A stretch of DNA of 63,426 nt, filler included, from Hyphochytrium catenoides (taxonomy: Eukaryota; Protista; Hyphochytriomycota), in the NCBI GenBank assembly GCA_900088475.1. It is 7 parts of 7 records of this genome, joined end to end, with 100 filler letters (N's around TTAATTAATTAA, not from the genome) between each part and the next. Parts side by side here need not be neighbours in the genome. Positions count along the whole stretch, not along the records: positions 25,547 to 43,792 come from FLMG01001917.1; 6 more parts are not named here. One strand, written 5' to 3'. This document shows, piece by piece, positions 25,547 through 43,792 of this stretch. Each line of letters starts with the position of its first letter. The first letter of the stretch is position 1. The translations under genes and the position numbers were made by a program. Under the pieces are notes generated by a model, which saw nothing but the letters and a program-made list of their open reading frames with translations, made no database searches and had not been told where the DNA came from.

Positions 25547-25730
25547 TCTCTCTCTGTGTGTGTGTGTCTCTTGCTTTCGGAGTCTCACTGCCTCGTCGAT
25601 TCTCCTTCATTTGTGTGTGTGTGTCTCTCTTTTCTTTGGGTTCTTCGTCTGCGTTTTCTATCTTCCTTGTTCTCTCCCTACAGCCTCTCGCTGCTGACTT
25701 TGGCCTTCTCTGTGCCTCTCTCTGACTCTC

Positions 25731-25791
<61 letters not shown>

Positions 25792-25956
25792 CTCTCTTGC
25801 TTTCGGAGTCTCACTGCCTCGTCGATTCTCCTTCGTTTGTGTGTGTGTGTCTCTCTTTTCTTTGGGTTCTTCGTCTGCGTTTTCTATCTTCCTTGTTCTC
25901 TCCCTCTAGCCTCTCGCTGCTGACTTTGGCCTTCTTTGTGCCTCTCTCTGACTCTC

Positions 25957-25995
<39 letters not shown>
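25547..25995 (+). repeat. Tandem duplication of about 235 bp at the scaffold start, probably in a kinase intron
   Basis: gtgtgtgtctc(tc)ttgctttcggagtctcactgcctcgtcgattctcc... occurs at about 25556 and 25783, each copy ending in (CT)n. Confidence 0.8.
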
Positions 25996-26001
<6 letters not shown>

Positions 26002-26013
26002 CTCTCCCCTCAG

Positions 26014-26869
26014 CTAGAGCAGGCGAAATGGGAAATTCAGGTGCAGAGAGAACTCTCTCATCCTTCTCTCCTCACCATCCTCGATGTTGGTTCTGTGCCC
26101 AGTCCTTCTGGGAGAGGAGAGCTCATCTACATCCTCATGCCGCTCTATGAGGTGGGCAGCGAGAAAGAGAGAGAGAAGGAGAGACATATGATTAGAGTGA
26201 AAGGAGAGAGAGAGAGAGAGAAAGAGCAAAAGAAGGCCTCGGAAGAGAAAGAGAGGGACCGAAAGACAGCGGACGAGAAAGAGAAAGGCATGTAGAGGGA
26301 AAGAAGAAGCAAGACGGAAGAAGAAGAGAGAGGATGAGCGAGACCAAGAGAGAGCGAGAGGGAGCAAGACGAAGAGGCAGATATCTTCCTGTCTTTCCTT
26401 CTGACTTATCATCTGTTAGGGAGGCACCTTGAGAGAAAGAATAGACGAGAACCTAAGGTAGACCATGCTTTGTGCTCTGCTAGAGAGCTTTCTCTCTTCC
26501 GCGCACCTCCTCATTTCTCTCTCTCTCTGTCTCTTACTTTCTCTCGGTGACTCCTCGTCCTCTCCTCCTGTTCTTTTCTTTCCTGTCCTCTCCCTGCATC
26601 AACTAGACTCTCTGTTTCTCTGTCCAACTACCTTGCAACAGGATCCGTTTCTTGCCCACTTCCTGCTTGTAATGTCTTGCTCTCTCTCTTTCTCCTTGTC
26701 TTTCTCTCGTCAGGCAAAGGACTCACATGGCGGAGAGAGACGTCCTCAGAATCTTCCGGGAACTTTGCGAAGGAGTCCAGCAGCTGCACCACCACCAGCC
26801 GCCCTGGGTCCACAGAGACATTAAGGTACAAAAAAAACTGGAAAGAGAGAGAGAAACAGAGAGAGAGAG

Positions 26870-26900
<31 letters not shown>

Positions 26901-27401
26901 AGAAAGAGAGAGAGAAAAAGAGAGTACTTAGCCGTGTGAGGATACTCCGTTGTCTTCCTGCTCTGGATTTTCTCTCTGTCTCACTCCGGCAATTTTATTT
27001 ATTGTCGTTTTCTTGTCCTTGTTCCGAACGCAATCATCGCCTCCCAGAGCGCTAATATCGAATGAATTCTATCTCTGTCTCTCTCTCTGTCTCTGCTCTT
27101 CTCTACTAGCTGCACATTCTCTCTATCGCTCTCGTTCTCTCTGGCTCGTTGTCTGTCTCTTGCTCGTTGTCTGTCTCTTTCTCTCTCATTATATTCTCTC
27201 TGTCTGTCTCTCTCTGTATAGCCAGAGAACGTTCTTCTTTCGGACTCTGACTCTCCAGTTTTGATCGACTTTGGGTCCGTCGGGCCGTCTGACCTTCGAA
27301 TCCAGTCCAGACTTCACGCCATGCAAGTGCAGGAAGAGGCTGCAAAACACTGGTAACGGGGAAGAGGATAGGGTGCACAAAGGAAAAAAAAAAGAGAAGA
27401 A

Positions 27402-27437
<36 letters not shown>

Positions 27438-28723
27438 AAAAACGAGAGATAGGAGAGAGAGAAAAAAGAGACTCTAGGGTTATACTTATGCAGAAGAAGA
27501 TACTATTGATTCGATGACTCAGGTAATGGGACTAACTTCCAGGCCCACCGCCCCGCTCTCTCTCTCTTTCCTTCTCTCCCTCCGTCATTCTTCTAACTTC
27601 TCCCTCTCCTGATTGCTCTCTCTCTCTCTGTTGCAGTTCAATGCCGTACAGAGCTCCGGGTAAGCATACTCTTTTCTTTACAATGGCTTCCTGCCATCGT
27701 CGAGCAAAATCTCTCTCATTTCCTCTCTCTCTACTTCTCGATCGGGTCTCTCCTTATCTCTGAATTCTGGTCTCTAACCTGTCATTTTGTTCCCTTTTCC
27801 GGACAGAGCTCTTCGATGTCGCAACAGGATCCGCGCTTGACTCCAGAACAGACGGTAAATGTCTTTATGGTTCTGCCCTTGATCGTAACTCTTTCAGACT
27901 CTCTCCGTTTCTGTCTTTCTCTCTCATTGTGTCTTTCTTCAAAGCACTTATTTACTCTCCTGTTTCTATGATGCTCAGTGTACTTGACCTCTCCTCTGCA
28001 ACCATTCTAACTCTCCGCCACGGTTCTCTCTGTCTCTCTCTCTCTCTCTCTTTTCAATCGTCTTCTCCACCGTCCCTCACATGATAGTGTGGTCCCTGGG
28101 TTGCTTGCTGTTTGCAGTTTGCTTTGGCTATTCTCCCTTTGAATGCAGCTTCACGACGGCGGGGGAGGTGAAGGTCCAAGAGTGTTCCTTCCTTCGCGTC
28201 ATTGGGTCATGGAGCTTTCCAGCCACATCGCCGTCAGTGCTTCTCTTTTCTCTCTCCCTTCACCTTTCTTTTCGATGCAGACGCTCACTCTCTCTCTCTC
28301 TCTCTCTGCCCCTCTGTCTTTCTCCCTTGTGCAGATATTCTGACTCTGTGCACAGGCTAATCCGGTAGGCGAAACGTCACAGTCTATACCACTCACTTTT
28401 TGAGGGACGGAGTGTTAGTGCTTTGTTTATTTCCCGTTGCAGAGCCAATCATCTCGCTGTCTTTTCTTCTCCGTCCGTTACCCAGACATGCAAGGACTCT
28501 CTTATTTTCTCTCTCAGAACGGTGCTTCTTTCTTCCCCTTTAGGGGGCTTGATCTCTCCTTCACTCTGTCTCTCGTTCTTTGTTCATTCTTAACATGTAT
28601 AATGCGGCCGGACTCTCTCTCTCTTTGCGCAGATGGATGCTGTCAGTAGACCCGGCAGAGAGGCCATATATCGATGATGTGCTTAGTTACTTGGCGGGCC
28701 ATAGCAAGCTCTCACCCAAGTAG
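26014..28723 (+). CDS. Ser/Thr kinase of the NAK family, STK16/MPSK1-like (multi-exon, N-terminus missing)
   Basis: Exons give EQAKWEIQVQRELSHP, YILMPLYE|GGTL, WVHRDIK|PENVLL, VLIDFGSV, QEEAAKHC|SMPYRAPE|LFDV, SRTD|VWSLGCLLF, GYSPFE, WMLSVDPAERPYID; stop at 28721-28723. Confidence 0.9.
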
Positions 28724-29788
28724 ACAAGGCAGACCAATCGATGGAAGACGCTCTTACTTTCGCCATCTGCCAAAACTTTGGAATCGCTGTTCTCACCAAG
28801 GATACGCCGCAGTCTCTCCTTTGGCCCTCGCCCTTACTTTCCTCCTTAATGGACGAAAGACTAGACACAAGTTAGCAGAGCGGTGCCTGGTTCCTAAAGA
28901 ACCCCGAGGTTCTCCCCAGGCTCCATCGAGGAAGGCCTTGGTAGGAGGCTCCAGAAGAAGGAAGAAGCAAGCGCAAAGCAAGCAATGGCTTTTCTTTATT
29001 GGCTTTAGATCTCGCGCTGGCTCTCCATTTCTGTCTCGAAAAGTTGCACTGGCTATTAGTCACTGCTCTGCCTTGGATCAGCTGTGCATGTCTTGGCTTT
29101 GCTAAGTGATAGAGAGAGAGGGGAGCATCTCTTCGCTGCCATGTCTCTCTCTTGCTCCGAGATGGCCATGGCGTTGTCCCGTCTTTCTTTCTGTATACTT
29201 CAGCCATCCGTCGCACACTTCTTCTCCTATCCCTTCAAGAAAAATACCGTGACGCTCTTTCTCTCCTCGTTCCCGGGCTCCATGTAGTTGCGTCTTGCCG
29301 TTAGGCTCCTGTTGAGCGGCCGGTTTGATGCTCAGCCTCCCTCCTAGATCCATGTGATGTCCGTTATCTTATACAGGGGGACGGAGAATAAAAAGAGACC
29401 CATCTTCCCCGTTTGAACCAGGTTCTGTCGTCCCTCTGTGGGCGACAGGTAGGGAACCATAACTCGACATATCAATCTGCTGCCATCTTTTTCTTCTCTC
29501 TCTTTCTCTCTGTTTGTCTCTCTCTTTTCAAGCAAGAGACAGTTGTAGTGCTCGTAAGCCGCGAACGACTGTGGCCTCTGTTTCCTAGAGGCAAGACAGC
29601 AAAACGAAGCCTTGAGGTCTTTCTATCTGTCTCTCTCTCACAAACGACAGCTAAGTGCTCATAAGGGACTCATGAGGTTGCCTCTGACTTCGACAGGCAA
29701 GAGAATTGCCCTGGTCTGCTGAGGTAGGGGACAAATGGAAAGGGCACTGGTCCAGAAGGGCCGTCTCTCTTGACCATGCAGAAGGCCT

Positions 29789-32700
29789 TCACACAGGCCC
29801 CGGGGAGAAAGAGGAAGTCAAAGAGCTCTGTCGATACTCTCCCAGAAGTGGGAGTTGTCTCTCTCCTGGCCTGCCTCCCTCTCTACTTCTTGATATCTCT
29901 GCCTGGATCTCACTGAGAATAAGACTCACTGCGCTCTGACTCTCCCGCGCACCCTGGTTGGGGCTGTTGGGAGCTTGAGGAAGAGCGGGAGGAAGAGTTG
30001 CTTCTTTCACCTTCTTTGTCTAGGGAAGTAGAAGAAGAGATGGCGAGAAGATGATAGAGAGGTCATTCAGCCGTGGTTGACAGCGCGCCATGAAGAGAGA
30101 AACTGTCTCTCTTCTCTCCTCTACTCCTCTCACTCCGTTTGCCGTCTCTCCTTCCCTCCCTCGTTTCGTTTCACTCTCTCTTCCTTACTCTCCTTGGCCT
30201 TTAGACTAGCTTGCCTCTCTTCTCTCTTCTCCCGACTATGATCCTCTCTCTGCTCTTTACCTTGAGCGTCCCCGGCGCTTTCTCGAGCCTTTGCTGCTGT
30301 AAGAGGTGAGCGGCTGAATATTCTCTCTCTGACGCTGTGAGGGCAACAGTGGCAAGCTTTCTCTGGACCTCTCCGAAGCGCTCTTCTTGTGCCCTCTGGG
30401 AGGCTTTCAAGCTACGGATCTCTTCGTCTCGGGCAGAAATGACTCTGTATATAGAACGGGAGAGGGAGAGAGAGAGAAAAGTGAGGGACAAGCCATGCAA
30501 CGGCGTACAAGGCACGACGTAAGGGAAGGGAAAAGAGTTGGAGCAGGTGAGCAGGCAACGAAGAGAATGAAGGAGGCTAAGCTTCTGGGAGAGTTACTTT
30601 TGAAGTGTCAGCACTTTGCTATAGAGAGCCTCCAACTCCGTTCCCTGCTCCTGCAGTTGCTGCTTCAGCATCTATGGAGAAAGAGGCAGGAGCGGCCGAC
30701 AGAAAGAGGTGTGTGTGAGGCTGAGTGCGTAGATGAGAGAGAGAAGAGGAAGAGAAGAAAGAGAGAAAGAGACAGAGAGGACAGACTTCTGGCGTACCAG
30801 AGATGCGTAACTGGAACAGAGAGAAGATGTTGGCGTTAAACATTGATAAAGCGCGGAAAGAAAGAAGCTGGTGAGTGATAAGGAACGAGGTAGGAGCGGT
30901 GAGCACACACAAAAGCGAGAGAGAGCAAGAGAGAGGGAGAGAGCTGTACGGCACCTCAATCGTCTGCAGATCCGAGCGGTTGAGAACGCGCAGCGCTGCC
31001 ACCTCTGCCGCTGCTTGTAGTCCATCGCGAATTGCTTTCCATTTCTCTTCCTCCAGAAGTATCTGTGAGATCCAAAAGGATCAGCAACACCTTGTCAGAC
31101 GTACCGTTGTGGGAGAGGTAGAAGGAGCAGGCATACACAAGCAGAGGGGGAGAGAGAGAAAAAAAGAGAGAGAAAGAATAAGAGAGAGAGAGAGAGAGAG
31201 AGCAGACCTCCTAAGCAGCATCGATTGAGGGATAACACCAAAACATAAAGGAACTAAGTCTAAGCAGACTGGCAGGAGCGGGGAAGACGATGGAACCCAA
31301 GAGAGAGAGAGGGAGAGAGAGAGAGAGAGAGAATGCAGAGAACAAACAGGTCAGAAATGTGGGAGAAAAGAGTGAGACGAAAAGAGACAACGAAAGTTTC
31401 TCTGCCTTTTGCTGTGTGGCTTCTTCTAGCGCGCTAGTCATTCTCTCATAGCGATGAAGGTCTTCGAGGCGATAACAGCGCTCCGCTTCAAGATCTTCCA
31501 GGCCTTCGCTCACCTTCTTAGTCAGCCTTTGACTTCAGCGGTATCGGGTAGGAAGAGCAAGGGAAAGGGCAGAGAGAGAGAAAGAGAGAGCGAGAGAGAG
31601 AGAAAGACAAAGAGACAAAGAGCACTTAACAATATCAGACTGCTGTCAGCTCTCCTCCCGCTTCTCCGTTCATTAAAACTTTGGTATGTACCTCTCTCTC
31701 TGTCTCTCTCTCTCTCCCTCTGTCTCTCTCTCTCTCTCTCTGTCTCTTGCCCTTTTTCTCTCTTCCCTCTTCCCTTGTTATCTATTGGCTTACCATTCTT
31801 CATCCTTCCTGGCTAACATTCCTTCTAGTTTGGACACTTCTTTCTGTGACTCCTTGTGCTTTTTTACGTTTCCCTGATTGGCCTTAACGGACAGAGACAG
31901 TTCCAGCTGCAGACGGGCGACTTCGGACTGCAGAGCAGAGACCTGGGTCTAGGAGAGAGAGAGAGAGTGTGTAAGAGAAGAAGAGAGAGAGAGATGCAGA
32001 TGAAGTGAAGATAGAAAAGGAAGAAGAGAGACGGTGAACTGAGAGACTCGGTGGACAGAGCGGACAGTAACAGTCTGAGAAACAGAGCCAGCGCGATACA
32101 CCTAGAGTCCGAGGAAGAAAGACAGCTTTTGACGACGACGGAGAGAGTGATTACACATAGTTACAATGAGAAGAGAGAGGGGATAGGGAGAAAGAAGCGA
32201 GGGAAGAGTAGGGATCTCTCTCTTTCTCTCTCTCCCTCCCCAACATGCCTTGGCAGCTTCAGACGCGGTCTTATGTTGGCTGCTCTCTTCCACCGCTTTT
32301 TCTCTCTCCTGCTGCAGAGTGGCCTAGAGAAAGGCATTCGATTTTGATAGGGATGGGATTAGAAGAGAAGAGATGGGAGAGAGAGAGACAATTAGAGGAG
32401 AGAGAGAGACAAAGAGAGAGAGAAGAGATGGATAATCAAGCAGTAGCAGGCGACAGACACCACCTTTAAAGATCACCGCCCATAGAGAAAATAAGGGTAG
32501 AGAGAAGAGAGAGTGAGGCTATAATAAGCAAGAAGAGAGCGACGAGACCATCTGTGCTCGAAGAAGAGGAGATAAAGAGACAGACAATGAAGAGAAAGAA
32601 AGCGAGAGACATTGGATAATAGAAAGAGACAGAAGACTGCGCGCTCTCTGTCTCCGCAGAGAGAGAAACAGACAGAGAGAGACAGAGAGTGAAAGAGAAG

Positions 32701-33313
32701 AGGGATGAGTAGTAAAGAGAGTAGGAGAGAATGGAGACTAGAGAGCTATCCCCTGGAGTCAGCGAGGAAATAAGAGAAAAGCATGTGAGAAGAACGAACC
32801 ACTTTCTGGTGCAGATCTCGGATCTCTTTCTGGCATACTTCCTGTCCTCTCGCAGCCTCTTTCTATACAGGGGGCATTCTCAGCAGGTCGGTCGCAAGCC
32901 AAGGAGAGGAAGAAAGAGAGAGAGAGAGAGAGAGAGATATCTGAAAGTAGAGAGGGAGAGAGAGAGAGCAGAGAGAAGTGAACGAGACAGGAGCACATAG
33001 GATATCACGAATCAAGAAGGAGTGAAGAAGAAAAGACGCGAAAGGGGAGCAATGCTCATAAGCGAATGAGGAAGAGAGTCAAACGAACGACTGCGAAAGA
33101 CGATAGTTGTCTGTGAGGGTGGAAGTTAGAGGAGAACCTTTGCTTCACTGAGCTCTTTCCTCAGCTCCTCATTCTGTTTATCAAGCTGCTGAATGGATGC
33201 ACGCCCCCCGCTCTTCTGCATCCTTGCTGCCGCCTCCTCTCTTTTGCTTGCTCCCTCTAGATCTATTTTTCTCTGTCTCTCTTGCTTTGCTCCTACTCTC
33301 TCGTCTTGCCCAT
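29789..33313 (-). CDS. Multi-exon coiled-coil protein of unknown function
   Basis: Heptad-rich exons flanked by GT-AG and CT-rich acceptors: SIQQLDKQNEELRKELSEAK, TQVSALQSEVARLQLELS...KLEGMLARKDEE, RLTKKVSEGLEDLEAERCYRLED, VISARDEEIRSLKASQRAQEERF. Boundaries are approximate. Confidence 0.55.
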
Positions 33314-33460
33314 GGCCACCTCGTTCTACAAAGCTTCGTCGTCGGTCCTTTTCCTTGCTCGTCCTTGCTTGCCCCTCTCTCTCTTTCTTTCTCCCTCTCT
33401 TTCTCTTGTCTCTCTCTTTCTCTCGGTCTCTCTCCTTTGTCCTCTCACCATTCGGCCGTC

Positions 33461-33523
<63 letters not shown>

Positions 33524-33895
33524 AGCTCTGTCCGTCTACTTTTCGATTGAGAACCGAAGAGACAAGGAAGCCAGACAACAAAACGGACAAAGCGCCCAAC
33601 TAGGTGCGCTTCAGGCCATAGCTTACAGTATACTATAAGCCGCTACGTACACTCACTCTCATGTGAAAGGACGTAGCCTCCATATTTAATGTTAAAGGAT
33701 AAGGAGTATTGCGCACCTAAAATAAACACAGGAGAGCAAGCCAAAGTGGCAAGCCTTCAGACAGAGTGAAAAGGGAGATGATGATATAAGGGGTATAAGG
33801 CTTACAAATCAAACCAGTGTTTGAAGAGATAGGGAGGTTGTCAACATTATCATGCTCACAGGATCTGGCAGGCAAGTTAAGAAAGAGAAAGAGAA

Positions 33896-33966
<71 letters not shown>

Positions 33967-34007
33967 GAGAGACAAAGAGAGAGGGAGAGAAAGAGAGAGA
34001 GAGAAAA

Positions 34008-34038
<31 letters not shown>

Positions 34039-34086
34039 GAGACAGAGAAAGACAGAGGAAGAGAGAGAGGGAGGGAGAGGAGAGAG

Positions 34087-34136
<50 letters not shown>

Positions 34137-34463
34137 AACGTGAAGAAGAGGAGAGAGAAAGAGAAACAGACTGCACGGTGCCATCACCTCACTACCATTT
34201 CCCCTCTGAAGGTGAGATAAATCTTTCGTTTCTTATGGCGATGGGAGCTTGACAAGAAGCAAGAAGCCAGAGCCAGCGCGCGGGACTGAGGGTCACAGGA
34301 AAGCAGAAAGCGGAAGCTGGAAAGAAAGAGATAGAAGAAGAGAGACACGGGGCCGTAGCACCGTCAGTGCACGCAGAGACAAGGAGAGGGAGGGAAAGCG
34401 AGAGACAGAGAGAGGAGAGCAGAATAGGAGAGGCCAAAGTGAGACACAAGAGTAAAAGAAACC

Positions 34464-37283
34464 ATGGTCGTGACGGACCGCACAGAAGAGTTCTCTCGCG
34501 CCTCAGAAGTCTTCGCTCAGCATGGCAGCGCATCCTCAACCTTGAAGCCCCAGCGGCGCCCGCTCTCAGAGTCCAGCCGAGGAGCCAATGAGCTCTTGGC
34601 AGGTGTAGAGACTACGGAGAGGATGCTGGCCCAGCTCTCGAAGCTGTAAGTTCTACGAAAGGGAGCACACAGACCAGCTTAGGCAACCTCTCACTCTCTC
34701 TCTCTCTGTCACCTTTTTTTCTCTTTGTCGGTATGGGCTCTCTCTCTCCTTCTTCTCCCTCCGTCTCTCTCGCTCTCTCGCTCTTGTCGCTCTCTCTTTC
34801 CCCTTCCTCCTCTTTTTTTCTCTCTCTGTCTCTCTCTCTCTCTGTCTCTCTCTCTCTGACAGACACACTCTCTCTCTCTCCCTCGCTCTTTCGCTCGCTC
34901 TCTTTCTTATTCCTGTCATTCTGTGTCCTTCTATCACTCGCTTATTGTTCTCTACCACACCTCCTTCAGAGTGAGTCGAAAGGGGTTCGTGAATGATCCA
35001 ACTCAGGAGATCAATGAAGTGACCGACATGCNNNNNNNNNNNNNNNNNNNNNNNNNNNCACAAAGTCTCTCTCTTTCCTGTCGTTATCTTTCGTTCGTTT
35101 CCAATGTTGAAGCATTCTTTCTTTTTCGATTCTGTCTCCATGGCTGTGGTCTCTTCCTGTCCGGAGTTATTCTCTAGGACAAAGCCAGGCTCTCTACCTT
35201 TTCTCGGTATCTGGTGCTCTCTCGTTCTCTTTGGCTCTTTTGTGCCTGATCTTTCTCTCTTTTTGTGTCCCCCGCTACTCTAGAGCAAGCAGTGTCGAGA
35301 GCATTTCACTGTCATTGCTGATGCCATCAAGGCTCGGCTCTCCAAGCAAGCCAAGAGCTTTCAGGTGGGTCAACTCAGCTCAGGTGCCGTCATGTTAGCC
35401 TGGGTTTCTGCATTGTAGAGACTATGCCTTGGTGTACCAGCCTCTCTTCTTTCCCGCTCACCTCCTCCTCCAGCTTCTCTTTCTTCTACTTTCAAGCTAT
35501 CCATCGGCTAAGTTTTGGGATTCCAGGACATCTTCTCCCTGTCTTTCTCTCTCTCCCAAGCTTCCCTCCTCCCTTACTCAGCTTTTCCACTTGCCTTCTG
35601 AAGGATGCGCTGGAGGTCCGAACAAAGGTGCTGAAGGAACAATCTGAGCGGAGAAGCCGGTTTTCTCATGGAGGAAGGAGTCCAATGGTTCAGTTCAATT
35701 CTCCTCTATTTATGGGGCCACAGGGCACACCGCCCTCCGCATCTCCTCCTTCTTCCGCTGTACCGTCCCCTTCGCCCTCTCCATCTCCAACACCACCCCA
35801 GCCACAGTTCAGGGCTCCTTCACCCTCTATTTCTCGCCCGGATACCGTTGGAATGTCTCCAAGTCCGGGAGGGTTCATGCCATCTAGAGACGCAGCAGGA
35901 CAGATGGCAACCTCAGGTGAAGAGCTGTCTCTGGCTCGCTCTAGTTGGGTTCCGAGTTTCTCTAGATATCCTTCTGTTCTTGAAATCTGCCGATCACGAG
36001 CTCTGCGTTCTCTGCTTCGCTATCCATATGCTGGGATTCCCCTGTGCAGTCGCACCTACATTAGTATACTCTTGGGAAGTATGCAAGTGATCCGCTCTTC
36101 CCTTTGTACATCTTATCTCTTTATTCGTCTAATCTCTTATTTCTGATCTCCCTCAGAGGGACTAAGAAGGCGAGCGAACCCTTATCAAGCGCTACCTAGG
36201 CCAGGTTAGACAAAGACCAGCTTCTTGCTTGGCTCACTCTGATTCTGTCGTCGAGACCCTCGGGGTTTTTCTTTGTTAATGTCTCTTAATGGAGATCTAT
36301 GTTTGATTTACTCCTGTTATTGGTAACTCAACTGCTTTTTCCTTCGCGTAGGCATGATAGGACAGCAGCAACTGTACAGCTCCTCACAGTCAGCGCGGTC
36401 TCGACTTGAAGAAGCGCAGCAAGTGGAAACCACTATTGTCGAGGTATCTCTCACCGTCAACTTTTCCATACTCTAATTCACCCCTACCTGCTTCACCTGA
36501 GAAACTTGCACCCAGAGCTAATCTATTCTCTTCCAGCTGAGCGGCATGTTCTCCAAAATGGCTACAATGGTTGCCCAGCAGGTAAGGAACCAGGGCGAAC
36601 TGAAGGCTAAGATAATAGGCTGTGCGGTCAATTTGGGTCCACATAAGTGACGAAAGAGTGAGAGAGAAAGGCGAGGTGGATGCGATAAGAGGAAAAGAAA
36701 GTCTTTGCATGCTCCGATGTTAACTCCACTGTTTTCTTAGGGTGAGATCGTGCAGAGAATTGATGAAGATATGGATGTGGCGTAAGTCGACACTCTCACT
36801 CGGAGTCTCCGCTTCGTAAACTTTTCCCGACATTGAAGCCAGCTCTTGTCTCAAAAATCTCTTCTCAACATCTCTCTGTATCCATCTCTCATAATCCTGT
36901 TATGGGTTACTCGGGAAGCTGATGCACGGCCCTCCTCTAAGGCCTGAGATTTGTGCCTCCTCTCATTTGCCTCAGACTCCCAGACACTTCTGGAACCTGT
37001 TTTTCCAATAGCTTCCTCTCCTGTCGATAACTTCTCACTCTTGCATCTCTCACCTCCTTCCAATCTTGCCACCACGCTGTGCAGTAAGGCGAACATAGAC
37101 GAAGGACAGGTAAGAGATCAGTCCCACCATCGCTCTCCGACGTAGATAGCAGCTGACAAATTTATGTGTGCCTAGAACGAGCTCCTTAAGCTCTACAAGA
37201 CCGTCTCAGGGAATAGGAGCTTGATCATTAAGATCTTTCTCCTACTCATCGCATTCATCACGCTCTTTGTGATCATATTCTGA
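34464..37283 (+). CDS. STX5: Syntaxin-5 / Sed5 / SYP3-type Golgi Qa-SNARE (multi-exon; N gap at 35032-35058)
   Basis: N-terminal DRTEEF SM-binding motif; NDPTQEINEVT; DALEVRTKVLKEQSERRSRFS; SNARE motif QVETTIVE|LSGMFSKMATMVAQQ|GEIVQRIDEDM; ELLKLYKTVSGNRSLIIKIFLLLIAFITLFVIIF-stop. Confidence 0.92.
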
Positions 37284-38785
37284 GGCCCTCAGAGAAGAAG
37301 TTTAGACTATTGACCCTTCATTCGAAGTTTATTTATTGTTACTCCTCTCATATCCAAGCTGTCAAATTCAAACCTTCCCTTACTAGTCGGAGGTCGGTGA
37401 AAGCATCTCTAGTTGCACCTCTCTGCGAGACCTCAGACGGACTGAACGCGCTGATCTGGCATCTGGCATGAAGCTTCTTTTCATCTTCCTGAACGCGTGG
37501 TTTACCATGAACCTCCGAGACGCTAAGTCTCTACTCTATCTGTATTTTGAGTTTGAACTGTGGCCTTTAGCTCTATCGTCCCTGTCGGGATAGCGCTGTT
37601 ATGGACCCCAATCCTGTGCAGTCCCCACAGAATAAGGCCCAAGATATGCTCAGGCCTCCTCTTCCCATCTCTCCATAGAAATGTCCCTCGGTCTATGATG
37701 GGCATTGTTCCGCTGGGGCTGTCCACATGCCGCTGAGGATTGAATGAGCCTGCACCGTCCGCCTATGAACTAGTGAGAGTTCCTGCTTGCCCTGCAAATG
37801 ACCTTTCAGTTTGCGCTGTGTCTTCGCCCTCTCCCAGGATAGTCGCTTTTATAAGTCCTTTAATATTGTCTTGGTGTCTATTACACTTCCTTGGCTCCGC
37901 AGTATAGATCTACTTTTCTGGGTTTACTTAGATCTATGGCGCCTCCCATCTTATTCGCTTTAGGGAGACAAATGAAACGACATTGGACCCGCTAACCGCT
38001 CTTGAATGTTTCCGGAAAGAATGAAACAGAGAACTGGGACCCTTCGCTTTTTATTGACAAAAGCCTCTGTACCTAAGCGAAACATATCCATGAAAAGTAA
38101 GCAACCTTTGTTACTGTTTATTTTTTGCGCTCCTCCATTATTCTCACTCTCACTCCCTACCCACCTTTCCTCCCCCCACACCCACTCTGCACCTCCACCT
38201 GTTCCTCTTCCCTGCACCAACAGACTAACTAAGGGTGGGTAGGACCAAAGAATGTTCCGCCCACTCCGTCCTCTGTCCTGTTCCTCTTCCTTCATCATCC
38301 TCAACAAAGCTAATGCGCACCCACCCACCCACCTTCTTGAATCTCTCTTTTTCGCTCTGTCTGGCTATTGTCCTCTCTGGTTCTTTCTCTGTTTCGATAC
38401 ACTTTCGCATCAAATATCTTCTCCCTGTATCTGTCACATCATATATCTGGATAAATGTTGCTATATGAGCACATCTAGTAGCCAATCTGTCTCGTGGTTC
38501 TTTGCTTGCTCTAAATATCTCTCGTGGCTTTCGTTCATCTCTTCATCACTCTGTCTCAGTTCTCCATGCCCTTGCTCCTGGTCTTTGCCGCTGTTCCTCC
38601 TCTTCCTCCGCTTGAGCTCCTTTTACTTTTGAATTTTTGCCCAAACTCTTAGCGTTGCCAACTGACTCGAAAGTATTCCGCATAGTCCGGGTGCAGCGGC
38701 AGAACTTACTGTAATAAAAGCCAACAAATCGTCCATTCCGCTATATCGTTCCGAATACATTCTGGGATATTCAGGATATAGGAAT

Positions 38786-41700
38786 ATGGATCATCTGTTC
38801 CAAGAGCTTTTGATGTTCAGGTTGAGCTCGCTCCGTTCAGAAGTGCCATCAGCAGCTTCGAAAAGCAGCAGAAGCCAAAAGCTCAAGAAGAGAGGCTTCT
38901 CATTGCATTACCAGGTGCTGTGCCTCTATGTGTGCTGCTCTCTCTGTGGACACTTACTAAGAAAGAGTTTTGAGTCACCAGCGGGGTTGAAGGCGACTAC
39001 GGGTCCCTTGAGACTGGGGCACACGGCTCAGGTTGGCAGGATGATGGCGGCCGGGATGAGACGCGAGCTCGCGGAGCTTCTCGTTGGTAAATACAACGGG
39101 CGAAAGCGAAGCGGGGACTATAGCTTTGAAACTAGCATTCCAGACTTGCAGAACGTACTCAACAAGCACGGCTACGAGCTGTACAATCCACCCAAAGATG
39201 GCCATTCCACTCTCCGTTGCTTCGCCCTGGGGCTCAATGGTGGTGGCACAGATATCCCTGACGAGCAGGTTGATGAGATTGTGAGGGAGCTGCGGAGGAA
39301 GATTGGTAGAGAGTGCGCACAGTTTGGTCCGCTTTTCTTGGAGCAGGGGACGCTCACCGCCAAGCTTCAGAGGGAACTTTACCAGCAGGATCCAACCCTT
39401 ATTGAGGCTCTTCGTCCCGAAGAGAAGCTTCTTCGATGGCAGCAGTTCTGGGAGGAGTTCACATCCTTTGAACGAGCGAGCTATGCAGATGTAGAGTTCC
39501 TCCTCTCCTTTCTCACGGAGCATCTGTACAAGGCCGAAAAGCTCTCTGTTGTCTTAATTCCTGTGGTGGCGCGCTCAGAGACCGAGGTTACTGTTGGGGA
39601 CTTCAAGATCCTTGGCTCCAAGACCTTGCATGACTTTAAGACTATCTTCATTGTAACCTTGGGAGGCTCTAGAAACTGCTGTCTCGTCCGGCCCTTACGA
39701 CAGAGGCTTCCCACCGAGATTCCGCTGCATGATTCAACGGGCCAAGCGGCAGCGATGAGGCTGTTCCCCGGAGAGGGCCTGGAGCATGTAGGAGACGATG
39801 GCACCAGAAAACGAGCTCTCTCGGGAGATGCTAATGAAGAAAGAGAGAAGTTGATCCGGATAGATGAGCTAAACAAAGCTGCGGTGGCTAATCTAACCGT
39901 TAATGGCAAGACAAGGAAAGGCAGGACAGACCTAACCATTCAACAAAGAAGAGAGCTCATCCACGACCGGAGGACGAAGAAGATGACAGTGGCAATGGTT
40001 GCGAGAAAGTACAACGTCTCAGACAGGACAGTGAGGAAGATTTGTCAACAGGAGGAGGAGGTGCTTCAGCGGTCTCTGCATCCTCACTCAAGCAATAGCA
40101 AGCAGGTCAAGCTCCAGATGAGGTTTCCGATAGTAGAACGGGGTATGCAAGAGTTTGTCTTCGCAATGAGGAGGGAGAACTACCCTCTCTCTATAGAGAG
40201 AATCCAACAGCAAGCCCTTCTTCTGGCAGAGGGCATAGGAATGACCTCTGAGGGATTCAAGGCCAGCAGGAACTGGGCATGTGGGCTGGTGAAGCGGATG
40301 GGCCTGGACCCTAAGTCTTTGGGTGGCGAGGAAGAGGCATCCGCAGCCATGACAGAGATCAAGAAGCTAAGGAAACGGCTAGAGGCCTATCCAGTAGAGA
40401 ACATCTACTACGTGCACGAGACAGATCTCTTCTACAAGCTTCTTCCTAAGAAGAGTTATGTCACTCTTGACGAAGATGAGAGGAAGTCTTTGAAGGGAGT
40501 AAAGCAGATGAAGCCTGAGGACAGAATTTCCCTTGTTCTCTGTACTAATGCGTCAGGGGTGCACAAGATCCCTGTGGCAGTGTTTGGGGCTGCATCCGCG
40601 GTAAAACGACTAGGAAAAGACCGGACCGAAGTGTTCAAAGAGCACAACGTCCATCTGCTTGCCCATAACAACCCATACACGGACTCTGACACCATGGGCA
40701 AGTGGTTCCACACAGTCTTTGTTCCTGAAGCAAGGAAGAGAGCAGCAGGAAGTGGAAAGGTTGCCTTGATTATCAATAACTGCGGCCTACACAGTGATTT
40801 GCAGCTGATGATTGACGGAGCAGACGATATCGATGTAATCTTCCTCCCGCCCGATATCCCTTCCTCTCTCCAGCCTCTACGACACGGAGTAGTCTCCTTT
40901 GTGAAGACAAAGTATCGCCATTTTCTCCTTGTACAATGGGGAAGACTCTTCCTACATCGTAAACTCCTACTGAAGGCAAGCGAGTTTATGAAGAGAGGGA
41001 GCAAGGGAATCAACCAGGGGCATCAGCCACACCTCCTGGACGCCCTCGAGATTCTTAGCAAGGTCTGGGCGCAAGAAGTGACAGAGGCAGATATCGCAAA
41101 GTGCTGGGTGAAGAGTGATATTCTAGCTGATGAGCAGCAGCGCAGAATGGCAAAGAGATATGGTAAACAGGGGACAAGTGAGAGGCCTCTCCCTCTCCCA
41201 GAAGGAACAGGACCGGACGGAGCCCCTCTTCCGCTTCCAGAGGCGGAAGAGGAGGAAGACGACGGCTCCTCCATGGGTGTTGGGGAAAAGATGGGGCGAA
41301 TAGAGGAAGGCTCTATGGCAGATAGGGAGAATCAAGCAATCCGGGAACTTGCAGCTCTCTTTGGTGACTTCAAGCTCTCACGGCACGAATGCAGAGCAAG
41401 GACAGAGACAGGAGTGATGGACGTAGATGTTGGAGAATGTCTCGAGGCGATGAGGGCTCTCTCCCCCGCCAAGAAAGAAGCTCTATTGAGAGAGTGGCTG
41501 CACACAGAGAGCAATCCTGACGTCAGAGAAGCTCTTCTCCAGGACCAGTTCGCTAACATCCTGCATGAGGCCAAGCGAGCAGCTCTAAAAGCAGCGCACA
41601 AGAATGCCGTGGGAGGTGGCGTCGAAGGAGCAGGCGCCGAGCACATGGAAGGAGGCTTAGAAGAGCAAGAGGAGGAGGCAGTCGTAAGTGAAGAGGCCGA

Positions 41701-41893
41701 GGTTGATGCTCCGCCAGAGGAGGAGGATACGTCTCTCCCTCTTCCGGAGCCAGAGGCCACACTGGACACTTTGAGGGCTTTCAAGGCGGCTCTGTTGAGA
41801 GTCGGCGCTGGACAGGTCCTCCAAGACATTAGCAAACTTGAGTGCCAGTTTCTTGTACAAAGAGATGCGGCCGCAAGAAGAAGGAAACAGTAA
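38786..41893 (+). CDS. Pogo/Tigger transposase-derived CENP-B-like protein with N-terminal OTU-like domain; catalytically dead; real start possibly the ATG at 39041
   Basis: HTH-psq-like LTIQQRRELI...VAMVARKYNVSDRTVRKI; CENP-B HTH FPIVERGMQEFV...YPLSIERIQQQA...FKASRNWACGLVKRMG; DDE_1 core YPVENIYYVHETDLFYKLLP, DRISLVLCTNASGVHKIP, ALIINNCGLH, FLPPDIPSSLQPLRHGVVSFVKTKYR, IAKCWVKSDIL. Confidence 0.9.
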   Translation: MDHLFQELLMFRLSSLRSEVPSAASKSSRSQKLKKRGFSLHYQVLCLYVCCSLCGHLLRKSFESPAGLKATTGPLRLGHTAQVGRMMAAGMRRELAELLVGKYNGRKRSGDYSFETSIPDLQNVLNKHGYELYNPPKDGHSTLRCFALGLNGGGTDIPDEQVDEIVRELRRKIGRECAQFGPLFLEQGTLTAKLQRELYQQDPTLIEALRPEEKLLRWQQFWEEFTSFERASYADVEFLLSFLTEHLYKAEKLSVVLIPVVARSETEVTVGDFKILGSKTLHDFKTIFIVTLGGSRNCCLVRPLRQRLPTEIPLHDSTGQAAAMRLFPGEGLEHVGDDGTRKRALSGDANEEREKLIRIDELNKAAVANLTVNGKTRKGRTDLTIQQRRELIHDRRTKKMTVAMVARKYNVSDRTVRKICQQEEEVLQRSLHPHSSNSKQVKLQMRFPIVERGMQEFVFAMRRENYPLSIERIQQQALLLAEGIGMTSEGFKASRNWACGLVKRMGLDPKSLGGEEEASAAMTEIKKLRKRLEAYPVENIYYVHETDLFYKLLPKKSYVTLDEDERKSLKGVKQMKPEDRISLVLCTNASGVHKIPVAVFGAASAVKRLGKDRTEVFKEHNVHLLAHNNPYTDSDTMGKWFHTVFVPEARKRAAGSGKVALIINNCGLHSDLQLMIDGADDIDVIFLPPDIPSSLQPLRHGVVSFVKTKYRHFLLVQWGRLFLHRKLLLKASEFMKRGSKGINQGHQPHLLDALEILSKVWAQEVTEADIAKCWVKSDILADEQQRRMAKRYGKQGTSERPLPLPEGTGPDGAPLPLPEAEEEEDDGSSMGVGEKMGRIEEGSMADRENQAIRELAALFGDFKLSRHECRARTETGVMDVDVGECLEAMRALSPAKKEALLREWLHTESNPDVREALLQDQFANILHEAKRAALKAAHKNAVGGGVEGAGAEHMEGGLEEQEEEAVVSEEAEVDAPPEEEDTSLPLPEPEATLDTLRAFKAALLRVGAGQVLQDISKLECQFLVQRDAAARRRKQ

Positions 41894-43236
41894 ACAGAAG
41901 CACAACATTACGAAGGAAAGAAGATAGTAGGCAGACGAAGAGGCCCGAGAGGGAGAGAGAGAGAGAGTCTGAGGGCGGAGAGAGAGAGAGACACCAGGGA
42001 GTATTGTCGACGTATTAGCTGTACCTCCTCCACAGTAGAGCAGAGAGACAACTGAGATCGTCCATTATTTGTTCTAGTATCATTACGGTCTAACTGCCTC
42101 TTGCGGTATGTGAATTTCTGTACATCTCTTCGACTGTCGGCGGGCACATATAATCAATGTCACAGAGAGCGCTGCGGGGTCTCTGTTTCCGAGCTGAGAG
42201 TTCAGGCGAAGAGAAGAAGACCGCCCGAGAGGACCCTTCATCTACATCTAAAGTCCTAATGCCCTGACATTCAGCTACGAGACTGTAGGAAAGGAAGGCC
42301 GACAGCCTGAACGCAGCAGAAGCTCTCCTACTCTGCGCAAGAAGCCTGAGAACATCTGACAAACATAGAGACTACTCGACGGCAGAGGCTGTATCTGAAC
42401 TCAGAAAGTAGAGGAGCAACGAGTAGCAAGAGAAGGTGAAGAGGTTGGGAATAACGAGGCACGATCCCAGATAAGAAAGCTGGGGCTTGGAATTTGAAAG
42501 AAAGAACGGAGCGTCAGAAGGTTAATAGCGCTAGCGAATATCCCCTATCGCTGTCGTGAAGATGCCCTCCTAGACGCAGAAGAGAAGGAATGAAGGCAGC
42601 CACTTGTCTTCCCATTTCTAAGCAGCAACGTCGGGACTTATGGTGCTTCTCCTATCATGCATTCCTCATGGCCTTTGCTCAATCGTCCATCATAGGAAGA
42701 AGTAAAAGATCCTTCTCAGTCGCGACTCTGCTCTCCGCGCCTGTTGAGGCGCCGTTCGTCTAGTGGTTGAAGCAAGCAAAGCTTAACACCTCCACGGGCC
42801 CCAGCGAGCGGAACTGGCACACAGTATGGAAGAAGCTCTGTAAAGCTCTCAAAATATAGCTCATGGGCGGTTGAAGATGCCATCAGAAGCTCCGAGGCGC
42901 CGCAGCTGCTCCACCAGCTGACAGAGAGACGAGAGACGAGGGTCTGTCTGGCGGCTGTTCTAAGCGCTGGCGCGCGCGCTGGGCCTTCGCTGTCTTCCTT
43001 GTGCACGAGCGCGCGGCTTCTATGAAATATGGAAAGGACCATCATGAGGATGGAGATTTACGTTATATTACGGTTTTAGTCATGGAAATTTACACGCTCA
43101 GAAGCTGGCGTGGTAGAGATTATGAAGGAATTTACCTTTTGGTTTGTACAGTTTGGACGGGGGGGACGTTCAAAATTGGAAGCAAGAAAATCAGAATCCA
43201 GAGTTCCTCCCTCCTCCCTCTGTCTCTCTCTCTCTC

Positions 43237-43278
<42 letters not shown>

Positions 43279-43370
43279 GCCCTCATCTCTCTCTCCTCTC
43301 AAGCTCCTTTTACCCCTTTGTTGGCAGAAACCTGCTTTGACTCCGAAGCTCATCAACTGGACGATCATCT

Positions 43371-43411
<41 letters not shown>

Positions 43412-43792
43412 ATAGCGCACAAGCTAGCCTTTGGGACACTAGAGGTCCTCTCTTTGCCCAAACAACTGCAGCCTTGTAGGCCCAGAAGCGCCTTAAGATC
43501 ACGCTGTAGTCCCTGACTCTGCCTGGTTAAGTGCCCCATCGACGCCTTTCGCTGTATCACCGCGGGCATGCGTCCCTCAAAGCAACACATCTTGGCCTGG
43601 GCAACTACGAGTCCGTCCGTCTGGTTGCTGCACGATATGCCATAGGAGGCCACGGAGCCATCGCCGCTATCCTCCTTGAATGGCCACACGGTGCTGCTGG
43701 TGGTGCCGTAGAGAGAAGTAATGAAGATCGGCCATGCTGAGCGACAAATGTATCACGAGGGCGAGGAGGAAGAACTTCAGGAAGAGGTTGGG

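Follow-up and report, generated by a model that had tools for sequence, protein, structure and literature searches.

In vertebrates, insects and fission yeast there are well-documented cases in which a pogo transposase was recruited by the host as a DNA-binding protein. The vertebrate pogo-derived genes (TIGD2-7, JRK, JRKL, POGK, POGZ and CENPB) originated from whole pogo transposase genes and have kept the helix-turn-helix (HTH) and DDE_1 regions; their catalytic triad is often altered, as in DD34S and DN35D, some of them are chimeric, with KRAB, ZNF or a CENP-B tail added, and their Ka/Ks values lie between 0.05 and 0.14 (PMC7386202). CENP-B, Abp1/Cbh1/Cbh2 of fission yeast and CAG of Drosophila represent independent pogo-like recruitments as DNA-binding proteins of the host, and CENP-B-related proteins have been judged on the absence of terminal inverted repeats (TIRs), an intact and constrained open reading frame (ORF), synteny, expression and phenotype (PMC4231638). 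Protist examples of pogo recruitment are few in the literature that we searched, where no domesticated transposase was described in Apicomplexa. Here we analysed an ORF of Hyphochytrium catenoides (assembly GCA_900088475.1) that is probably a host gene recruited from a DNA transposon of the pogo superfamily. It lies in a stretch of 63,426 nucleotides made of seven joined parts (the window, along which all positions are counted), and the region examined was the piece at 25547-43792 (FLMG01001917.1).

Transposase domains and catalytic residues

The piece contains a single long open frame, at 38786-41893 on the plus strand, with 1035 codons and no stop; residues are numbered along this frame, and all the features of the ORF given below are on the same strand. 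An RNase H-like transposase core, DDE_1 (PF03184), was found at residues 579-774 (40520..41107), where the match covered positions 2-177 of the 177 of the Pfam profile with an E value of 1.4e-23 and 83.8 bits (cut-off 22). Two HTH regions precede it. The second one, HTH_Tnp_Tc5, was recognised at residues 447-508 (40124..40309; E 1.5e-7, 31.7 bits, cut-off 22.2), and the first one, which is CENP-B_N/psq-like, at residues 377-429 (39914..40072; E 0.0093). The original prediction, made from the DNA sequence before this analysis, had described both modules as intact, and this held for the second HTH, whereas the first aligned with the N-terminal HTH of related proteins but stayed under the Pfam cut-off.

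The catalytic positions were located in two alignments, A1 with the Tigger-like hits and A2 with the 19 closest relatives retrieved by an exhaustive HMMER search. His544 (codon CAC, 40415..40417) occupies the column of the first catalytic Asp, that of the DETG motif, in both alignments; Asn664 (AAT, 40775..40777) occupies the second, that of DNxxxH, where all 19 relatives have Asp; and Arg699 (CGA, 40880..40882) occupies the third, that of QPxD, where Asp is present in 17 of the 19. The triad is complete in 14 of these relatives, and the query has none of the three Asp residues. Glu545, beside His544, is what remains of the DE(T/S)G motif. The 19 relatives show conservation of 80% or more in 79 columns, and 55 of these are retained in the query, so that the transposase scaffold is preserved and the catalytic residues are lost. 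The replacement of the triad at these three codons and the preservation of the scaffold, both of which had been proposed beforehand, were thus confirmed.

Two-metal catalysis by DDE/D enzymes depends on the catalytic carboxylates, and the protein is therefore predicted to be unable to catalyse transposition. That the protein is still an active nuclease or recombinase, with catalysis by the His, Asn and Arg or by other acidic residues close by, would agree with the well-kept RNase H-like scaffold, which is under selection (see below), and with the retention of Glu545; yet all three metal-ligand columns are non-acidic, one of them bearing a positively charged Arg in place of a carboxylate that this chemistry needs, and there are no element ends for such an enzyme to act upon. 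We regard this explanation as extremely improbable.

The C-terminal tail, at residues 801-1035 (41186..41890), has acidic stretches and helical motifs that are common to the pogo subfamily. Several relatives align into it, as far as residue ~930, and a W..E(D/E)..V motif (residues ~901-920) recurs in many of the relatives at the corresponding place, pointing to a tail inherited from the ancestral transposase family without novelty. By protein-language-model features the tail is closest to 'Jerky-like' tails (0.89), which we take as a lead only. A Pfam match to TilS in the tail (21.2 bits) was discarded as a chance match on a helical acidic region.

Relatives of the protein

The exhaustive HMMER search gave 3521 hits in a library of 15 billion proteins. 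The top hits were all pogo-type proteins of ~500-700 amino acids, mostly from metagenomes and run assemblies; the best of them were 33-36% identical to the query over residues ~370-800, with E values down to 1.6e-59, and a named relative belonged to the diatom Skeletonema dohrnii. In a quick maximum-likelihood tree, the clade of these relatives was split from the Tigger-like hits with 99% support by the Shimodaira-Hasegawa-like approximate likelihood-ratio test (SH-aLRT). The query fell within the clade but was unattached there, and its terminal branch measured 1.89, where the median was 0.95. The protein can accordingly be placed, on its sequence, in a protist/diatom-associated clade of the pogo superfamily.

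Membership of Tigger was ruled out by the tree, the query lying outside the Tigger-like group; of the proposed assignment to pogo/Tigger, only the pogo superfamily was upheld. The protein had also been called CENP-B-like, a functional label for which we found no support; by the position of the query in the tree and the absence of any Pfam match to the CENP-B dimerisation domain at E values up to 0.1, it does not belong to the CENP-B family proper.

Transposon hallmarks and copy number

TIRs were searched for by comparing the 2.5 kb upstream of the ORF with the 1.9 kb downstream, with the CT/GA microsatellites masked and shuffled sequences as a control. The top inverted match between the flanks scored 25, whereas the shuffles averaged 22.9 and reached at most 26, so that nothing above chance was found and the absence of TIRs nearby, as noted in the original prediction, was borne out. 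The inverted repeats reported by a separate search were GA/CT microsatellites. There was no second copy of the ORF elsewhere in the 18-kb piece, nor any candidate miniature inverted-repeat transposable elements or cognate ends: the repeats of the piece were CT/GA microsatellites and one 226-nucleotide tandem duplication.

In order to estimate the copy number, contigs of three DNA runs (X1, X2 and X3), which come from two samples sharing the organism label and filed in 2011 and 2017, were placed on 37250-43150, and word depth was compared between the ORF and its flanks. In X1, the depth was 366-439 for the ORF contigs and 325 for the flank contigs, or, at the places with two variants of the flank, 206 plus 234; in X2, it was 27-30 for the ORF contigs and 10.5 plus 9.8 for those of the flank. 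High depth within this region was confined to the GA microsatellite at 41947-41991. The copy number of the ORF is therefore that of its flanks, and the depth gives no sign of a dispersed family at an identity of 80% or more.

Selection on the open reading frame

The main ORF contigs of X2 (filed in 2011) were compared with the window. One X2 contig (38560-39733) reaches from the upstream flank into the ORF, and the comparison is therefore between sequences of the same locus. The ORF showed 19 differing sites, comprising 16 synonymous changes and three conservative replacements (A231T, K709R and V967I). The ratio of nonsynonymous to synonymous substitution rates (dN/dS), calculated by the Nei-Gojobori method, was 0.056-0.079, varying with the transition weight, and falls inside the range published for the vertebrate pogo-derived genes. 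Under neutrality, which predicts about one synonymous difference in four, the binomial probability that 16 or more of 19 sites are synonymous is 4e-8 to 1.5e-6, and it was still not above 1e-4 on the assumption that the gaps between contigs conceal four further nonsynonymous variants. Synonymous differences outnumbered nonsynonymous ones in each part of the protein, by 4:1 in both the N-terminal region and the core and by 8:1 in the tail, and X2 was identical to the window at all three triad codons, with His, Asn and Arg kept. The whole protein, including an additional N-terminal domain described below, is under strong purifying selection.

These data bear directly on whether the ORF is the immobile remnant of an inserted transposon, drifting neutrally and still free of stop codons. 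Such a relic would account for the loss of the catalytic triad, for the long terminal branch in the tree and for the fact that no orthologue from another species is known among the proteins of the library. It accords poorly with a frame open over 950-1035 codons (the chance of a 1035-codon open frame arising in random sequence is ~3e-22), with the retention of the family-conserved columns and, above all, with the excess of synonymous differences and the conservative nature of the other three. A neutral relic is, in our opinion, very unlikely.

Gene model

The 5'-end of the frame differs between the window and the reads. Within 38739-38787 the contigs of all three DNA runs have nine substitutions relative to the window, one of which (38787 T>A) gives AAG instead of ATG at 38786, and at 38877 one base is missing in runs X1 and X3, shifting the frame. 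Codons 1-85 (38786..39040), which translate to low-complexity sequence, are probably a noncoding 5' extension of the mechanically defined ORF. Since the reads destroy the ATG at 38786 and shift the frame at 38877, we placed the start downstream of this disruption, where the first in-frame ATGs are those of Met86 (39041) and Met87 (39044), with a purine at minus 3. The start codon is likely Met86, and the probable coding sequence of the pogo-derived gene extends from there to the stop (39041..41893) with a product of 950 amino acids, provided that splicing does not add an exon from further upstream; the sample differences (16 synonymous and three nonsynonymous) span codons 143-1008. The predicted ORF of about 1000 codons without stop or frameshift thus stood for the 1035 open codons of the window, but its first 85 codons are made doubtful by the reads. 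Exact look-ups of the 1035- and 950-amino-acid products in public protein collections returned no called gene.

At 38739-38787 and 38877 the window has either been misassembled locally or derives from a source with a divergent allele. The conflict with all the read sets at these places, together with a scaffold gap in the piece (35032-35058), could be taken to mean that the ORF itself is an assembly artefact or a contaminant foreign to the genome. Against this, the ORF is covered at flank depth by contigs of three runs from two samples (2011 and 2017), one contig bridging flank and ORF, and the flanks are rich in CT/GA microsatellites like the remainder of the piece; an artefact is so improbable that we gave it almost no weight.

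The N-terminal domain

An additional region of ~285 amino acids (residues 86-370), which had been overlooked in the original prediction, precedes the transposase part and has no match in the fetched relatives. By protein-language-model features, residues 112-322 (39119..39751) resemble OTU domains: the score was 0.92, with 174 and 170 features shared with OTU clusters, and 91 of the 100 named nearest clusters carry PF02338. This signal was weaker under looser domain boundaries. Other approaches did not confirm the assignment. Pfam and PDB sequence searches of the domain, both up to E 10, gave no match, nor did a word-based homologue search find anything, and the two single-sequence AlphaFold (AF2) models of the domain were poor, with a predicted local distance difference test (pLDDT) of 40 and 45. 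We give roughly even chances to the domain being OTU-like. Judged by eye, and taking D-G-x-C to be the OTU motif, D138-G139-H140-S141 has Ser at the expected Cys, and no His stands at the place expected for the C-terminal His motif of OTUs; that the domain is an inactive OTU is speculation. The N-terminal region contained four synonymous differences and one nonsynonymous difference between the samples.

Ginger1 and Helitron transposases are known to carry OTU domains as passengers (PMC2836005), and the OTU-like module may for this reason stem from either the element or a host gene. No pogo-OTU fusion was described in the literature searched. It is conceivable, though we consider it doubtful, that the gene encodes a double pseudo-enzyme, in which an OTU-like module without nucleophile is fused to a pogo transposase without catalytic Asp and is retained as a chromatin factor that recognises ubiquitin-type marks and couples this to the binding of specific DNA sequences.

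Four relatives (P0013, P0014, P0017 and P0019) have an N-terminal Cys/His-rich extension (C-x2-C ... H-x2-C) that is missing from the query. The subfamily has thus gained different N-terminal modules on more than one occasion. In addition, a 529-amino-acid ORF without Pfam family adjoins a related pogo gene (L002:1907-3496, minus strand); it is dissimilar to the N-terminal domain of the query.

Evidence for and against recruitment

Six criteria, those of Feschotte and Pritham in the form used in PMC4231638, usually serve to recognise a domesticated transposase, and three of them were found at this locus: the absence of transposable-element hallmarks, an ancestry in a transposase, and an intact, constrained ORF. 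Two findings that the original prediction had named as contrary to it, numerous TIR-bearing copies in which the triad is intact and a dN/dS near 1, were not observed. Its preference for domestication over a decaying element agrees with the absence of TIRs, the flank-level depth and the low dN/dS, but the label 'CENP-B-like' attached to it found no support.

A number of observations weigh against the recruitment of a host gene. The best protein identity found in the library was only 33-36%, and no orthologue from another species was found there. The selection test covers one sample pair under one species label and 19 sites. The first HTH falls short of the Pfam cut-off (16 vs 21.2 bits), DNA binding is deduced from homology only, and the runs listed for the stretch included none of RNA, so that the 5'-end and the intron-free model are provisional. 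Finally, the ORF contigs of both samples break at the same three to four places (~39788-39856, 40558-40651 and 41280-41347), and the flanks at 38318-38589 and 42818-43150 are present in both samples as two variants at about half the depth of the ORF, one variant differing from the window by 28 substitutions and five gaps over 272 bases. The shared breaks and the half-depth variants mean that both samples have either two haplotypes or a near-identical pair of copies whose flanks are homologous.

The same breaks and variants, in leaving room for two copies, would agree with an explanation in which selection acts on the transposon family and not on the host: the inactive transposase would repress or titrate related active pogo elements that persist elsewhere in the genome, or else would belong to a larger low-copy element that ends beyond the examined region. 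Dominant-negative transposase derivatives keep the DNA-binding region and the scaffold without catalysis, as this ORF does. The N-terminal module could moreover have come with the element, like the OTU passengers of Ginger1 and Helitrons (PMC2836005). On the other side, depth shows no multi-copy family at an identity of 80% or more, no TIRs were found within 2.5 kb upstream and 1.9 kb downstream, an apparent host gene, recognised by eye, lies ~1-1.5 kb upstream on the same strand, and the N-terminal domain was present in none of the 150 best relatives and none of the 169 fetched proteins. Selection at the level of an element is unlikely in view of these results.

If the ORF is a recruited host gene, as we consider probable, its product would no longer cut or join DNA. 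The pair of HTH regions would bind a DNA motif, possibly relics of the ends of the ancestral element, which would make the protein a sequence-specific binder of DNA or chromatin, and the dead core and the C-terminal helices would form a scaffold for oligomerisation or interaction. At the N-terminus, the OTU-like module would bind or, less probably, cleave ubiquitin-type modifiers. Since an intact gene at one locus has lost all three catalytic residues and is nevertheless under strong purifying selection, its product most likely serves the host as a DNA-binding protein.

Genomic surroundings

The piece has a GC content of ~50% and intron-rich neighbours, which together with its CT/GA microsatellites give an impression, and no more than that, of tissue-cyst coccidia. 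In a parasite with few transposons, if the host were one, the gene would be a rare trace of former pogo activity and a nuclear factor specific to its lineage. Upstream of the ORF and on the same strand, short exons were noted at 34443-36647 (+), which by eye we take to resemble syntaxin 5 (STX5), with the motifs D-R-T-E-E-F (~34470), L-E-V-R-T-K-V-L-K-E-Q (~35640) and the SNARE-like E-T-T-I-V-E-V (~36440); Pfam, PDB and homologue searches with these fragments were all without match and did not confirm the resemblance. The scaffold gap at 35032-35058, of 27 N, falls among these exons. Several short coiled-coil-like ORFs without family match lie between microsatellites at 30200-33600 (-), which suggests a multi-exon gene. 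The 226-nucleotide unit is repeated in tandem at the start of the piece (25547-25998) with 97% identity. CT/GA dinucleotide microsatellites pervade the flanks (25547-38700 and 41947-43420), and the ORF (38.8-41.9 kb) is free of them. A Pfam search of the flank ORFs and short exons and an Rfam search of the piece found nothing.

Comparison with known systems

The locus offers a cleanly testable case of pogo recruitment, with one locus, no transposon ends, the whole triad lost and measurable purifying selection, and its extra constrained domain may link the gene to ubiquitin signalling. We regard the gene as soundly annotated and worth experimental work, though unsurprising in kind.

The OTU-bearing transposases, Ginger1 and some Helitrons, resemble the ORF in having a ubiquitin-protease-type domain fused to a DNA transposase (PMC2836005). 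They belong to other superfamilies, and the OTU of Ginger1 is C-terminal and recognised by Pfam, whereas the domain of the ORF is N-terminal, is missed by Pfam and occurs in a gene that appears to be non-mobile. The active pogo elements of protists and diatoms (P0007-P0029, ~570-700 amino acids) are its best sequence matches and have subfamily motifs in common with it, both in the tail and following the third catalytic position; they mostly have the DDD triad (14/19), some of them are on several contigs, and they are without the 285-amino-acid N-terminal domain. The terminal branch of the query is roughly twice the median found with them.

With CENP-B, Abp1/Cbh1/Cbh2 and CAG the ORF is related at the level of the superfamily only, and it shows only the three features named above among those by which domestication is usually recognised. 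Unlike the vertebrate pogo-derived genes, to which it is not orthologous, it belongs to a clade apart from the Tigger-like proteins, its nearest named relative being that of a diatom; three triad positions are replaced in it and not one, and the added domain is OTU-like and not KRAB or ZNF, with no CENP-B dimerisation domain. It nevertheless resembles these vertebrate genes in combining the HTH and DDE_1 regions with a dN/dS of ~0.06-0.08 and an added N-terminal domain.

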